Below are positions 781-18,734 of a DNA stretch of 64,000 nucleotides, one piece after another. The position numbers and the translations under genes were made by a program. A model generated the notes under the pieces. It had not been told where the DNA came from. It worked only from the letters and a program-made list of their open reading frames with translations, and did not search any database. This stretch comes from Octopus sinensis. Taxonomy: Eukaryota. Position 1 is the first letter of the stretch; every line of letters starts with the position of its first letter. The DNA is taken from positions 186,001 to 250,000 of the forward strand of contig NW_021836152.1 of NCBI RefSeq assembly GCF_006345805.1, read 5' to 3'.

Positions 781-897
781 ACATAGACGAGTGCACAGCA
801 GACCCATGCGGGGCACAGAGGAAATGCACCAACACACCAGGATCCTACACATGTGTCTGTAATCCAGGGTTCGAGTTCAGCGGAACAACATGCATTG
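781..897 (+). CDS. Calcium-binding EGF exon 1 (type A): [39 protein letters not shown]
   Basis: ttttactttccAG acceptor ends at 780, GTaagt donor at 898; 117 nt, phase 1-1; 6 Cys, D-I-D-E-C and C-x-N-x4-Y-x-C cbEGF consensus. Confidence 0.9.
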
Positions 898-1311
898 GTA
901 AGTAAAACAATAGACAACATCACGCGTATAGGTGTAACTGGTTTCAAGTTATAATAACAAAAAATAATTATAGTAATAACATTAATAATAATAATAATAA
1001 TAATAATAATAATAATAATAATAAAAATAATAACCATAATAATAACAAAAATAATAATAATAATAATAATAATAAAAATAATAACCATAATAATAATAAC
1101 AAAAATAATAATAATAATAATAATAATAATAATAATAAAAATAATAACCATAATAATAACAAAAATAATAATAAATAATAATAATAATAATAATATTAAT
1201 AATAATAATAATAATAATAATAAATAATAATAATAATAATAATAATAATAATAATAATAAGAAGAAGAAGAAGAAGAAGAAGAAGAAGAAGAAGAAGAAG
1301 AAGAAGAAGAA

Positions 1312-4300
1312 GAATAACAATCAGGGAGGTACGTACTTTAAACTTACAACTCAAAATGTACGAAAACCTACACGTGCAAAACAATGTGACAACAGAAATG
1401 AACGGACCGGTACCCTACGAAAATGACGACCGTCAAAATAATGGGCCGGACGTTGTTCCTCATGTCCCGCAAGTAAAACCCAAAAGACATAAATGGACAC
1501 GTGAGGAATACATTTCTATCCTACACGCATACTTCACAGCTCTACACAAAAAATGAAAACACAACAACGCATACATATAAAATATGGAAAAAAAATAACA
1601 TAAATATAAACTTGGATACAGCAATGAACCCTAATAAATTAGCTAACGTACGAAGATACATTCTCAACGCAAAAAAGTATCAGAAATAGAAATAGAACAC
1701 CTAAAAGAAAAAATACACCAGGAAAATGTAGATAGAAGCCACACAACAATGCCCAATAATATAAACACTGAAACAGTAAAACACGAAGACAAACGTAACA
1801 TTCCCAACAAACACGATGTAAACAAAAAAACAACAAACCCAGACCGTAGGATGCATAATAATACACGACGAACAGCAAGCCAAAACACGGCAAATAATCA
1901 TATAAATAAGAAAGAAAGCGACACAAATCTAAAACCTGGAAACAACGAAGGGGAGCCTAATGATTATGATAATATAAAAAGTAAAATAATCAAAGAACTG
2001 AAAACCACAGAGCTCAAAATGGACCACCGACCATACCTCCCAAAAATCAAAATAGACGAAACAACAACACCAATTATAAACAGCATAAACCTAGCCGTCA
2101 CGGAACTAATAGCCACTGAAACAAAAAGCGATATCACTGAGCTAATTGACTTAGTATACGCAGCAGCCACTGCAACCACAAAAGAAGCTGGATACTCACT
2201 CAAACCCATCCAAACAAGAGTACCACCACCCAAACAAACCCTGTGGATAAATAGCATCCAAAACAAAATACAAAAAATGAGAAAAGATCTGTCAATTCTT
2301 AATGAAATCAGTAGACAATCAACGTTACTGAGCAACAAAAAGAGAACAAAAATACTCCGCAAATATAACATCACAGAAAAAGATTTACCTGAGATAAAAG
2401 ATAAGCTGAAGCAAGATATCCTTGCCAAAGCACAAAGGATCCGCCGGTACGAGAAATGCCAGCGCGTCTTTGAACAAAACAAAAAATTCAACTCCAACCC
2501 CAAAGAGTTCTACCAAGAACTTGGCAAAAATAAAATAGAAATCACTGCAGCACCAACGTCAGAAGAAGTGGAAGAATTCTGGAGAGAAATATGTTCGGCG
2601 AACGAACAACAACAAAAAAAGGAGTATTAAAACAACAAACTCAGCATCTGAGCAACTTTGGACCCCCATAACAACTGAAGAGGTCACCCAGGCACTGCAA
2701 AGACTAAGCAACTGGAAGGCACCTTGGCATGACAAGAGACCCAACTTCTGGTTGAAATATCTTACAGGAATGCACAAAAAGCTGGCTGAAAACTTTAACA
2801 ATATACTAGCAGAGCCAGAGACAATGCCTGAATGGCTCACGAAGGGGAAAACCATCTTAATTCCCAAATCAAATGAGACAGCAAAACCAGAAAACTACAG
2901 ACCAATAACCTGTCTCCCTACAATGTACAAGGCATTTACTGCAGTGATATCGCAAAGGTTGAAAAAGCACCTGGACGAAAACAATCTGTTTCCAGAAGAG
3001 CAGAAAGGATGCCGCAAAGGCTTATATGGCTGTAAAGATCAACTAATGATTAATAAAGCCATAACTGAAGACAGCCACAGAAAGAAGAAAGGCCTCAGTA
3101 TGGCCTGGATTGACTACAAAAAGGCGTTTGATAGCATCCCCCATCCATGGATCCTCGAAACACTGGCCATTAACAAAGTAGCACCAACAATTATAAAATT
3201 CATAGGGCACTCTATGAATAAATGGCAAACAGTGCTACAGCTCCAAACAAAAGAGGGACTCATGAAAACCAAAGCCATCCCCATTAGAAGAGGAATATTC
3301 CAGGGAGACACGCTCTCTCCACTCCTTTTCTGCTTGGCACTGTCACCTCTATCTGATATGCTAAATAGAACTGGATGCGGATATAAATGTTACGGCAAAA
3401 CGATCAGCCACCTTTTATATATGGATGACCTAAAACTATACGCTGCAAATGACAAACAGCTGGAAACACTATTAAAGACAGTTCATGGATTTACCAAAGA
3501 AATAGATATGAAATTTGGATTAGAAAAATGCGCCAAAGTAACCATGAAAAGAGGAAAACTAGTTAAGAGTAGCAACATCATACTAGATAAAACCAATGAA
3601 ATAAAAGAATTAGACGAAAGCCAAACTTACAAATACTTAGAAATCCATGAACTAGATAAGACACAACACACACAAATGAAAGAGAAAATAAAAAAAGAAT
3701 ATTATAGACGAGTTAGATCAATACTAAAAACAGAGCTCAATGCTAAAAACAAGATAATATGTATTAACAATTTAGCCGTCCCAGTTATAAGTTACAGCTA
3801 CAATATCTTTAACTAGACACTAAATGAACTGACCAAAAGAGATAGGAAAACAAGAAAAATAATGACAGGATCTAAGATGCATCACCCAAAATCTGACATA
3901 GAAAAACTATATATACAACGTATAGAAGGTGGTAGAAACCTTATACAGCTGGACAACTACTATAAAATAACCACCATAGGATTGCAAAAATATCTACTTC
4001 AGAAGGAAGGAAAACTGATACAAATAGCCGCAAAACACGAGCAAAACAAAAAACTGTTCTCAGTATTTAAGGAAGCTGACAAATACAAACAAGAAATCAT
4101 ACCACCTAATAAATATGAAGAAGAAGAAGAAGAAGAAGAAGAAGAAGAAGAAGAAGAAGAAGAAGAAGAAGAAGAAGAGAAGAAGAAGAAGAAGAAGAAG
4201 AAGAAGAAAAAGAAGAAGAGGAAACAACAAAATCTATAAAACAAATGAAATCCAAACTAAAAATAGAACAGCAACAAAACATGATAAAACGATGGCAAGA

Positions 4301-5160
4301 AAAGCCCCTTCATGGTAAATACCGGACTAAACTAAACGCAAAAGAAATAGACAAAGAAAAATCCCAGCAATGGTTGAGAAGCTCAGGACTCAAAGCAGAG
4401 ACAGAGGGATTTTTAGTTGCCACACAAGACCAAAGCCTCCCCACCAGAAATTACCAAAAACATGTAATGAAAAGAAATATAACAAGTAACTGCAGAATAT
4501 GTCGTGATGGACAAGAAACAATAAATCATATTATCTCTGGCTGCCCAGTCCTTGCTAAGAAGGAATATATTCACAGACATGACAGAGTTGGAACCTACAT
4601 ACACTGGAAGCTATGCCAACATTATGGAATAACAACAGAAAAAAGATGGTATAGGCACAACCCTGAAAAGGTCACAGAAAACGAAAAAGCAATCATACTC
4701 TGGGATATGCCGATACACACAGATAGAGAAATTAAGGCCAACAGACCATATATAGTTGTCAGAGATCATGAAGAAAAAAAATGTTTTCTAATTGATGTAT
4801 CAATACCGGAAGATAATAACGTGTCTCTAAAAGAAATGGAGAAACTTTCAAAATACAAAGATCTGGAAATAGAGGTAACCAGAATGTGGAATCTAAAAAC
4901 AGAAACAATTCCTACCATAGAAGGTGCATTAGGCATGATAAAAAAATATTCAGACAAATACATAACAAAAACACCAGGACTTACAAACACATATAACATA
5001 TAGAAAATTGCACTACTAGGCACTGCACACATCCTACGCAGAAGACTTTCCATACAATAACCATCAGAGCATCACAACAAATCACAGCACATACCCAAGG
5101 CACACAGAGCTGTGCTCGGTAGTGAAGTGAAAGCACGCTATAAAAATAAAACTACTGAAT
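1312..5160 (+). mobile_element. R4/Dong-type non-LTR retrotransposon family A, 5'-truncated, disrupted
   Basis: N-terminal KWTREEY...KLANVRR motif; RT motifs (NYRPITCL, DYKKAFDS, FQGDTLSP, YMDDLKL); CCHC finger CRICRDGQETINHIISGC; REL (ANRPYIVV..IDVSIP..K..KY); ends ...ctactgaat(AAT)n; frameshifts and stops. Confidence 0.92.
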
Positions 5161-5689
5161 AATGATAATAATAATAATAATAAAAATAATAACCATAATA
5201 ATAATAACAATAATAATAATAATAATAATAATAATAATAATAACAATAAAAATAATAATAATAATAATAATATTAATAATAATAATAATAATAATAATAA
5301 TAATGATAATGATAATAATAATGATAGTAATAATAATAATAATAATAATAATAATAATAATAATAATAGTAATAATAATAATAATAATAATAATAATAAT
5401 ATTAATAATAATAATAATAATAATAATGATGATGATGATGTCGATAATGTTGATGATGATGGGGATGATGATGATGATGATGATGATGATGATGATGATG
5501 ATGATGAATAATGATGATGATGATTAATGATGATTTATGATTGATGATGATGATTGATTATGATTATGATGATGATGATGATGATGATTGGAGATGATTG
5601 ATGAAGATGATTGATGAGGAAGTTTGATGAGGATGATTGATGATGAAACAAGTATTATATTCACGTAATAAAATTGTTTTACTTTCCAG

Positions 5690-5806
5690 ACATTGACGAG
5701 TGCACAGTTTTCCCATGCTTGGACAATGAGGTATGCACCAACACACCAGGATCGTACATATGTGCCTGCAGTCCAGAGATCGAGTTGAACGGAATATTTT
5801 GCGTTG
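5690..5806 (+). CDS. cbEGF exon 2 (type B): [39 protein letters not shown]
   Basis: actttccAG / GTaagt, 117 nt, phase 1-1, 6 Cys. Confidence 0.85.
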
Positions 5807-17658: not shown

Positions 17659-17775
17659 ACATAGACGAGTGCACAGCAGACCCATGCGGGGCACAGGGAA
17701 TATGCACCAACAAAATAGGATCCTACACATGTAGCTGTAATCCAGGGTTCGAGTTCAGCGGAACAACATGCATTG
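17659..17775 (+). CDS. cbEGF exon 9 (type A): [39 protein letters not shown]
   Basis: cttttcAG / GTaagt, 117 nt, phase 1-1. Confidence 0.9.
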
Positions 17776-18134
17776 GTAAGTAAAACAATAGACAACATCA
17801 CGCGTATAGGTGTAACTGGTTTCAAGATATAATAAAAATAATAATAATAATAATAATAATAATAATAATAATAATAATAATAATAATAATAATAATAATG
17901 ATGATGATGATGATGTCGATGATGTTGATGATGATGGGGATGATGATGATGATAATGATGATGATTATGATGATGATGATGATGATGATGATGATGATGA
18001 TGATGATTGATGATTATGATGATGATGATTGATGATGATGAAACATAAGATGATTGATGAGGAAGTTTGATGAGGATGATTGATGATGAAACATAAGTAT
18101 TATATTCACGCAATAAAATTGTTTTACTTTCCAG

Positions 18135-18251
18135 ACATAGACGAGTGCACTGGTTGGCCATGCGGGATAAATGAGGATTGCACCAACACACCAGGATCCT
18201 TCACATGTGCCTGCATTCCAGGGTTCGAGTTGAACGGCAGAATTTGCATTG
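18135..18251 (+). CDS. cbEGF exon 10 (type B, identical to exon 8)
   Basis: ctttccAG / GTaagt, 117 nt. Confidence 0.85.
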
Positions 18252-18617
18252 GTAAGTAAAGCAGAATAGACATCACGTGCATAGGTGTAACTGGTTTCGA
18301 GTTATAATAATAATAATAATAATAATAATAATAATAATAATAATAATAATAGATAATGATAATAATGATAATAATGATGTCGATGATGTTCATGATGATG
18401 GTGATGATGATGATGATGATGATAATTACTGAAGATTGATGATTGATGATGATGATGATGATGATGATGATGATGATGATGATGATTGATGATGATGATT
18501 GATGAAGATGATTGATGACGATGATAATGATGATTGATGATGATGATGATGATGATGATGATTGATGATGATGAAACAAGTATTATATCCATGCAATAAA
18601 ATTGTTTTACTTTTCAG

Positions 18618-18734
18618 ACATAGACGAGTGCACAGCAGACCCATGCGGGGCACAGGGAATATGCACCAACAAAATAGGATCCTACACATGTAGCTGTAAT
18701 CCAGGGTTCGAGTTCAGCGGAACAACATGCATTG
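18618..18734 (+). CDS. cbEGF exon 11 (type A, identical to exon 9)
   Basis: cttttcAG / GTaagt, 117 nt. Confidence 0.85.

Follow-up and report, generated by a model that had tools for sequence, protein, structure and literature searches.

A rapidly remodelled array of calcium-binding EGF exons from a lineage-restricted gene family in Octopus sinensis

We analysed a 64,000-nucleotide (nt) stretch of the Octopus sinensis genome (hereafter the window; RefSeq assembly GCF_006345805.1, contig NW_021836152.1, positions 186,001 to 250,000 of the forward strand) that carries, close to its left edge, a tandem array of exons for calcium-binding epidermal growth factor-like (cbEGF) domains. The array is real and belongs to an octopus gene family that is restricted to its lineage and poorly annotated; the array turns over rapidly in structure, with divergence concentrated in the exons. 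A BLASTN search of the window with the first repeat unit recovered 11 full cassette copies and one exon-less relic, the latter as a partial match at 16-58. The exons span positions 781 to 18734 of the plus strand, all 11 are exactly 117 nt long, and all are open in one phase (1-1), with two bases of a split codon at the 5' end and one at the 3' end. Each is preceded by ag and followed by gtaagt, leaving the 22 splice sites strong and intact without exception. Every exon encodes one 39-residue cbEGF module that starts with D-I-D-E-C and follows the consensus D-I-D-E-C-x4-C-x5-C-T-N-x2-G-S-[YF]-x-C-x-C-x2-G-F-x6-C-[IV]. The joined product matched the Pfam family EGF_CA (PF07645) over nine stretches with E = 4e-70 (232 bits against a gathering cut-off of 27). 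Six cysteines in EGF spacing, together with the calcium-ligand consensus D/N-x-D/N-E/Q-C … N … Y/F, are complete in 10 of the 11 exons. The exception is exon 3, in which the fourth cysteine is replaced by serine and the sixth by tyrosine, and whose first base is G instead of A, so that the junction codon reads Gly and not Asp. These are the only two cysteine losses among the 30 exons of the three arrays compared below.

The exons fall into two types, A (seven copies) and B (four copies; Table 1), which are 73-85% identical to each other and have different versions of the intronic flanks. Copies inside one array are 92-98% alike, and exons 8 and 9 are identical to exons 10 and 11 as a duplicated pair. 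A conserved upstream flank of ~45-47 nt (gatgaaaca(ta)agtattatat…ttttac…cag) runs into the exon through …ttttac(t)tt(c/t)cag, and a conserved downstream flank of ~52 nt follows it, starting with gtaagtaaa (gtaagtaaa…ggtgtaactggtttc[a/g]ag). Tandem Repeats Finder located in every intron an (ATA)n tract followed by (ATG/GAT)n, the (GAT)n part being degenerate. The landmark GATGTCGATGATGTTNATGATGATGG occurs eight times, against none expected from shuffles. Six introns (324-575 nt) contain flank and microsatellite only, and the repeat unit measures about 0.45-0.7 kb; the other four of the ten (introns 1, 3, 6 and 7, with 4792, 6663, 1237 and 1463 nt) are enlarged by transposon pieces. No Rfam family matched within the window. 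A preliminary description of this DNA had proposed 11 phase 1-1 cbEGF exons of 117 nt, conserved flanks around each of them and a fixed landmark in the introns, and the copies, borders, translations, Pfam match, flank lengths and landmark counts agree with it on all three points. Its claim that the introns are built from microsatellites holds insofar as each contains the tract, but only the six short ones consist of nothing more.

Protein database searches with queries of 311, 576 and 118 residues against 5.8 billion proteins returned a single close protein, Octopus vulgaris P0001, annotated as ‘wall 2-like isoform X3, partial’. Its gene (locus L001; assembly GCA_951406725.2, scaffold CATOCA020000013.1) is situated at one end of an unplaced scaffold of 113 kb. 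Three exons in the 5' part of L001 code for a signal peptide and a stretch rich in cysteine, with CCKGW at its end, and the same cassette exons follow. Positions 27620-28889 of L001 are collinear with positions 1-1263 of the window, the exon-less relic included. The left edge of the window therefore cuts the intron that precedes the first EGF exon, leaving the 5' end of the gene, and with it probably the first three exons, outside. For the part of the gene that had been sought to the left of the window, the homologue thus supplied the signal peptide and CCKGW exons, the window's own 5' end being outside the window. L001 resembles the window in its 117-nt cbEGF exons, intron flanks, (TAA)n/(GAT)n introns, relic and 1.26 kb of collinear start. 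It differs in its exon sequences (8-14%), unit order, block duplication and transposon insertions, and its contig ends within the array.

A third array, O. sinensis locus L002 (scaffold VCDQ01005401.1), comprises 12 cassette exons, with flanks and microsatellite introns as in the window, and a CCxGW exon adjoins it directly upstream. This paralogue is more distant (82-87% over the cassette), and its exons are of the D-K/T-N-E-C type. The RefSeq model at this locus, a fragment named ‘adhesion G protein-coupled receptor E2-like’ (P0238), begins in a mariner fragment and uses only 3 of the exons. The last exon before the array encodes CCKGW or CCTGW in both L001 and L002, and the motif is also present in the paralogues P0053 and P0058. 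In the O. vulgaris paralogue P0053 (locus L003), each EGF domain again occupies one 117-nt exon, with long unique introns in between, and the last exon encodes an odd EGF domain and a tail. The microsatellite introns gave no matches of at least 400 nt to L003, and the cassette introns are therefore specific to the subfamily of the window. Two exons of L003 (33953-34069 and 38476-38592) both encode residues 130-168 of P0053 exactly and the model uses one of them, which suggests another duplicated EGF exon or an alternative one.

The arrays differ in ways that document their turnover. In the window, a two-exon B-A block is present twice in tandem (Table 1), two substitutions and some indels of microsatellite length being all that separates the copies. 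The O. vulgaris array contains a separate block duplication (A-A-B, with a period of ~2.7 kb and small differences between the copies). Unit order reads A-B-A*-A-B-A-A-B-A-B-A in the window and A-A-A-B-A-A-B-A… in L001. The relic cassette of the window is also found in L001, at 27635-27715; therefore, the loss of its exon predates the split. In the unit trees, type A exons cluster by array. Further, the first exons of the window and of L001 are near-identical in their flanks but differ in motif, each having the one typical of its array (ACSPGFVFNG in L001). An array-specific motif in positional counterparts is the kind of signature that gene conversion or repeated unequal exchange within the array would leave. 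A promoting role of the microsatellites, as proposed in the preliminary description, is conjectural: the ~215 nt of non-microsatellite homology in each unit would be enough for such exchange, and breakpoints inside the homologous units are not placeable. The two independent block duplications, the relic, the differing unit order and the array-specific exons bear out the earlier proposal that domain number and order change by unequal exchange.

We compared rates of change in three matched unit pairs of the window and L001, the contrast as a whole resting on three arrays. Unique DNA upstream of the array, between the relic and exon 1, has 7 mismatches in 542 nt (1.3%; 98.5% identical). The intron flanks differ at 5 of 294 positions (1.7%) and the matched short introns by 2.6-4.4%. 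The exons, by comparison, differ at 40 of 351 positions (11.4%; 8-14% in individual pairs), which is ~7 times the divergence of the adjacent intron (Fisher p = 5e-7 for exon versus flank). Decay of CpG sites was ruled out as the cause, since a single one of these 40 differences is a CpG transition. Counted over a tree of 18 units, change per site was 0.88 for nonsynonymous and 0.56 for synonymous sites and ~0.32 for the flanks, with a nonsynonymous-to-synonymous ratio (omega, dN/dS) of ~1.57 (range about 1.4-1.6) and p = 9e-5 for nonsynonymous versus flank change. Changes at first, second and third codon positions numbered 20/36/17 in the 18 units (chi-square p = 0.014) and 56/93/50 in 30 units (p = 0.0003). 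The six cysteine codons took only 2 of ~164 nonsynonymous hits, both in exon 3, whereas neighbouring codons changed up to nine times; at the D-x-D/N-E-C, Asn and Gly-Ser-Tyr/Phe positions, change is absent or almost absent. Across the 30 exons of the three arrays there is no stop codon, frameshift or length change. The exons are not decaying, because second positions change most while cysteine and scaffold codons stay. This pattern points to an EGF scaffold that is probably under purifying selection and to loops that are probably diversifying under selection. The excess over the adjacent intron, the dN/dS ratio and the second-position changes agree with the description of the array as fast-evolving. 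In the deeper comparison with L002, flanks and synonymous sites have about the same rate of change, and between the close arrays the similarity of the flanks is that of the neutral 1.3% level. Both results weaken the idea that the conserved flanks are splicing regulators.

Long interspersed nuclear elements (LINEs) make up the large inserts of introns 1, 3 and 7 and those beyond exon 11; they have matches to the reverse transcriptase (RT) family RVT_1, a CCHC motif (CxxC…H…C), a restriction-like endonuclease (RLE) with [KR]PD…D[VIM], and 3' ends of the form …aaaactactgaa(taa)n. All LINE copies of the array are sense-oriented and sit inside the TAA tract. The hallmarks of R2/R4/Dong-type elements are thus present (RT, CCHC, PD…D endonuclease and one-orientation insertion into (TAA)n), and the inserts would fit (TAA)n-targeting elements of the R4/Dong kind, a candidate placement from motifs. 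A (GAA)n run precedes every 5'-truncated, (TAA)n-tailed LINE copy (1259-1314, 4117-4223, 6549-6639 and ~20185-20215), which suggests a product of the integration junction or a preference for (TAA)n/(GAA)n targets. The minisatellite in the transposon tail of intron 6 has 94% matches among its 43-bp units. A 123-bp tandem duplication (2.0 copies, 99% identical) lies at 9471-9721, in the first open reading frame (ORF) of the long intron-3 LINE.

Beyond exon 11, no EGF sequence followed position 18734 in a six-frame search with an EGF regular expression or in tblastn searches with three paralogues (E up to 50). A candidate acceptor at 22677, read from the sequence, would end the protein two codons later in phase 1 (…Ala-Ile-stop), with AATAAA at 22909-22914. 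An alternative candidate at 22300 (22300-22455) was likewise read by eye. Both are situated downstream of the final (AAT)n(ATG)n tract, and neither is supported by homology or transcripts. No host exon is recognisable in the right two-thirds of the window. Mobile elements there include a mariner-type helix-turn-helix (27000-27299), a Penelope-like GIY-YIG domain (32639-33088) and a LINE with an apurinic-type endonuclease and reverse transcriptase (34418-37527). A purine-rich (AGAA)n-type tract of ~2 kb (39358-41324) is followed ~5 kb further on by its complement, (TTCT)n, over ~0.7 kb (46749-47458), and these tracts account for the extreme GC and AT skews of the region. An ORF on the minus strand (51119-56002) runs uninterrupted for 1628 codons without a Pfam match at E up to 0.001. 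It looks internally repetitive and propeller-like, and either a single-exon gene or a large protein of a mobile element could account for it.

Table 1. Coordinates of the exon array and of associated features in the window (LINE, long interspersed nuclear element; RT, reverse transcriptase; RLE, restriction-like endonuclease; SINE, short interspersed nuclear element)
Feature	Position	Strand	Remarks
Exon-less relic cassette	16..95	+	Upstream flank joined via ‘acaga’ to downstream-flank end, then (TAA)n
LINE 3' fragment between relic and exon 1	139..680	+	RPD…D motif; unique DNA, neutral yardstick
cbEGF exon 1, type A with B-like upstream flank	781..897	+	Positional counterpart of first EGF exon of O. 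vulgaris P0001
Intron 1	898..5689	+	Flank, (TAA)n 951-1260, (GAA)n 1259-1314, LINE with RT ~1320-4116, (GAA)n 4117-4223
Intron 1, remainder	up to 5689	+	Second LINE 3' part to ~5157, (AAT)n 5158-5427, (ATG)n 5426-5646, flank
cbEGF exon 2, type B, most divergent exon	5690..5806	+	
cbEGF exon 3, type A, damaged, splice sites intact	6299..6415	+	
Intron 3	6416..13078	+	Flank, (TAA)n, (GAA)n, 5'-truncated LINE to ~8675 with (TAA)n tail
Intron 3, longer second LINE	ORF 8864-10090, RT 10030-11400, CCHC/RLE 11998-12690	+	Then (ATG)n 12866-13033, flank
cbEGF exon 4, type A	13079..13195	+	
cbEGF exon 5, type B	13520..13636	+	
cbEGF exon 6, type A	14212..14328	+	
Intron 6	14329..15565	+	Transposon tail with 43-bp x17 minisatellite (14537-15266), then (TAA)n/(ATG)n, flank
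cbEGF exon 7, type A	15566..15682	+	
Intron 7	15683..17145	+	Flank, (TAA)n, LINE 3' end ~15880-16252, (AAT)n tail 16253-16335; intron has 99% identical copy in L001
Intron 7, remainder	16336-16900	+	Internal LINE fragment, then (GAT)n, flank
Tandem-duplicated two-exon (B-A) block	16901..18812	+	Copies ~16901-17860 and ~17898-18812
cbEGF exon 8, type B	17146..17262	+	
cbEGF exon 9, type A	17659..17775	+	
cbEGF exon 10, type B	18135..18251	+	Same sequence as exon 8
cbEGF exon 11, type A	18618..18734	+	Same sequence as exon 9; final EGF exon in window
Start of post-array intron	18735..22204	+	Normal downstream flank, (TAA)n, SINE-like insert 18813-19110, LINE fragments 19146 to ~22080
LINE domains in post-array intron	CCHC/RLE 19096-19938; RT/RLE 20238-21911	+	Then (AAT)n(ATG)n 22083-22204; unique sequence after
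Candidate last exon, unverified, without homology support	22677..22914	+	Strong polypyrimidine tract, ag, CT ATC TAA; read from sequence

Among solved structures, the best sequence match is the EGF region of ADGRE5/CD97 (9mqr_A, E = 2.5e-46), and the N-terminal cbEGF runs of ADGRE5/CD97 and EMR2 resemble the modules of the window. In the genes for these two proteins, the exon of each cbEGF domain is a cassette subject to alternative splicing. Neither a GAIN/GPS nor a seven-transmembrane domain was present among the larger plus-strand ORFs scanned, no full six-frame profile scan of 18.8-64 kb having been made. Unlike ADGRE, the full-length paralogues P0053 and P0058 have only EGF families in Pfam, short tails and no receptor part. 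Thus, the parallel with ADGRE/CD97 drawn in the preliminary description stands for the domain sequence but does not extend to the whole protein, the full-length paralogues ending after the EGF array without a receptor. Likewise, the ‘modular surface or matrix protein’ proposed there is modular and, from the signal peptide of the homologues and the cbEGF domain in every exon, extracellular; its role at the surface or in the matrix is conjecture. The closest named proteins are fibulin-, fibrillin- and LTBP-like, and a paper on the skin-mucus proteome mentions no more than a generic fibulin-like protein. The fibulin C-terminal (PF22914) and TB (PF00683) domains were listed for fish and other matches but not for the octopus homologues, and neither is in the window. 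An EMI domain, as in EGFL7, MEGF6 and the emilins, was rejected for the N-terminus of P0001, which matched no Pfam family at E up to 10 and no solved structure.

Homogenised introns beside hypervariable exons are known from the HLA class I genes of the major histocompatibility complex (MHC) and from conotoxin and snake PLA2 genes. As in those genes, the exon cores of the octopus arrays are far more diverged than the intron, and nonsynonymous change equals or exceeds synonymous change; unlike in them, the hypervariable unit is a repeated module within one gene and not a series of alleles or paralogues. The array is a further example of an already known type of system. Concerted evolution is a feature of the repeat units of Eater. 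This protein and NimB/C belong to the insect Nimrod superfamily, characterized by a signal peptide, a CCxG[Y/W] motif and a long run of EGF-type repeats with the NIM consensus CxPxCxxxCxNGxCxxPxxCxCxxGY (PMC4073527). The octopus homologues are Nimrod-like in their succession of signal peptide, CCxGW and EGF repeats, the CCxGW part lying outside the window. Their repeats, however, are canonical cbEGF (DIDECxxxPCxxxxxCTNxxGSYxCxCxPGF) and not NIM, and they have no known transmembrane region or immune function. Octovafibrin, the egg-tether protein of O. bimaculoides, is a secreted protein of 29 tandem EGF domains with a C-type lectin domain at both ends. Its EGF repeats are of the non-calcium-binding, Notch-like hEGF type and form disulfide-locked, load-bearing fibres in the egg tethers (PMC10336842). 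It was rejected as the identity of the gene, its peptides being unlike the cassette and no lectin end domains having been seen in the homologues. Octovafibrin is an analogue and no relative, and it shows a possible use of such arrays.

We think it probable, if far from assured, that the window holds the repeat part of a gene for an octopus secreted protein that is remodelled by exchange and conversion while its scaffold stays fixed and its loops diversify. Such a gene would encode, in order, a signal peptide, a short region rich in cysteine with CCKGW at its end and a long cbEGF run, with one domain per 117-nt phase 1-1 exon. Each unit would consist of upstream flank, exon, downstream flank, (TAA)n and degenerate (GAT)n. 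Misaligned homologous exchange between units would produce the block duplications and exon loss, and gene conversion would spread an array-specific exon version among the copies. The (TAA)n tracts presumably also served as landing sites for (TAA)n-tailed LINEs with a restriction-like endonuclease, which have inflated several introns. Selection would hold the EGF scaffold (the six cysteines, D-x-D/N-E-C, Asn and Gly-Ser-Tyr/Phe) and let the surface loops diversify. Exon cores would then differ between arrays far more than introns because the scaffold is fixed, the loops diversify and the introns are homogenised, as in MHC class I. The exons are presumably spliced into one mRNA, mostly constitutively, and the product probably acts as an extracellular binding or matrix protein.

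Several observations weigh against this interpretation. Omega exceeds 1 over the whole exon only at borderline significance (p ~0.07). Since the exons also show raised synonymous divergence, part of the exon/intron contrast reflects older exon lineages or conversion and not protein selection alone. We read the contrast as a mix of loop diversification and of intron homogenisation with distinct exon versions retained, and not as proof of regulatory flanks. The database holds no protein model of the window's own array, the searches having returned only O. vulgaris and O. sinensis fragments, and they contained no transcript, expressed sequence tag (EST)-like, proteomic or spliced-fragment trace of its exons. 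The 45 kb after exon 11 contain no paralogue-like terminal exon or C-terminal domain. L001 may be an allele, a sister-species orthologue or a recent paralogue. Finally, the perfect two-exon duplicate may be two haplotypes assembled in tandem. The exons at 18135 and 18618 would then be an assembly artefact, as their identity to the preceding pair and the allele-like differences between the blocks (microsatellite indels and two substitutions) would allow; given the independent and clearly real A-A-B duplication of O. vulgaris, with its ~2.7-kb period, we regard this as very unlikely.

There are two further explanations. In one of them, the array is dead or dying, either as an untranscribed duplicate or with its 3' end cut off by transposons, and looks intact through recent duplication. 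The transposon pile and lack of a terminal exon after exon 11, the damaged exon 3, the relic unit, the missing protein model and transcript fragments and an omega near or above 1 are what a dying array would present. Neutral decay nevertheless predicts equal change at the three codon positions, and the second position has about twice the changes of either of the others. Thirty exons in three arrays are free of stops, frameshifts and length changes, cysteine and calcium-ligand codons are essentially invariant beside neighbours with up to nine changes, the 22 splice sites are intact, and even the older, diverged exons at 5690 and 13520 are undamaged. We consider a dying array decidedly unlikely. 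The other explanation is an ordinary structural protein of the matrix or of egg-case-type fibres, comparable to octovafibrin, fibrillin or fibropellin, whose repeat number matters mechanically and whose repeats differ mostly through tolerated drift and not through selected diversity. Long disulfide-locked EGF runs do serve as load-bearing fibres in octopus egg tethers (PMC10336842), the nearest named proteins are fibulin-, fibrillin- and LTBP-like, and the copies within an array are 92-98% alike. Tolerated drift does not, however, predict the second-position and nonsynonymous excess over the adjacent intron. Octovafibrin is of another family with its Notch-like hEGF repeats and C-type lectin ends, and the homologues showed no TB, lectin or fibulin C-terminal domain. 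A fibre protein of this kind is unlikely.

The preliminary description had also raised the hypothesis of cassette or combinatorial splicing of the array. In its strong form, the locus is a regulated alternative-splicing cluster, in which exons are skipped and combined into many isoforms of a recognition protein, as in ADGRE5/CD97 and, at the extreme, Dscam. With 117 nt and phase 1-1 throughout, any subset of exons stays in frame. However, exons of EGF modules are by default symmetric in phase 1-1, and such symmetry is therefore no evidence of skipping. The near-identical intron ends across units could serve regulation; in the L002 comparison, however, the flanks change at about the synonymous rate, a result that speaks against strong regulatory constraint. 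The P0001 model joins type A exons and omits an intact B exon at L001 32903, and the P0053 model uses one copy of its duplicated exon. The O. vulgaris annotation, however, merges ab initio, protein and transcript evidence into consensus models (PMC10700109), and the skip in P0001 therefore proves nothing. RNAduplex predicted pairing of the B downstream flank with the A upstream flank at -18 to -22 kcal/mol (z ~-3), in B-to-A introns only. The consensus fold of 22 intron-end pairs reached only -2.6 kcal/mol, and a double change in 1 of 15 pairs gives no covariation support. On these grounds we regard an intron-bridging or docking-selector RNA structure as conjectural, the duplex signal being modest and confined to B-to-A introns. 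Loop diversification would fit a binding function, and protein searches returned no spliced fragments. Taken together, a regulated splicing cluster appears unlikely. More speculative, and in our view improbable, is a diversity-generating recognition locus, with diversifying loops and uniform introns, in which individuals differ in exon number, order and sequence and exon skipping, guided by the shared intron ends, multiplies the isoforms. If true, this would give cephalopods an EGF-based system comparable to Dscam, FREPs or Sp185/333.

By the textbook route, extracellular proteins grow through tandem arrays of module exons. The octopus array, read as the repeat part of a remodelled gene for a secreted protein, catches such growth in progress, with a perfect block duplication, a dead exon, a relic and a conversion-spread exon version side by side. 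Its TAA-tract LINEs illustrate how an intronic microsatellite may draw site-specific retrotransposons and enlarge a gene. If the contrast between exons and introns holds in more genomes, the array would offer a compact system in which to study how selection maintains the diversity of repeat modules against recombination that homogenises the DNA between them. It would also be a system for a lineage-restricted family of secreted octopus proteins that annotations have mostly missed or fragmented.

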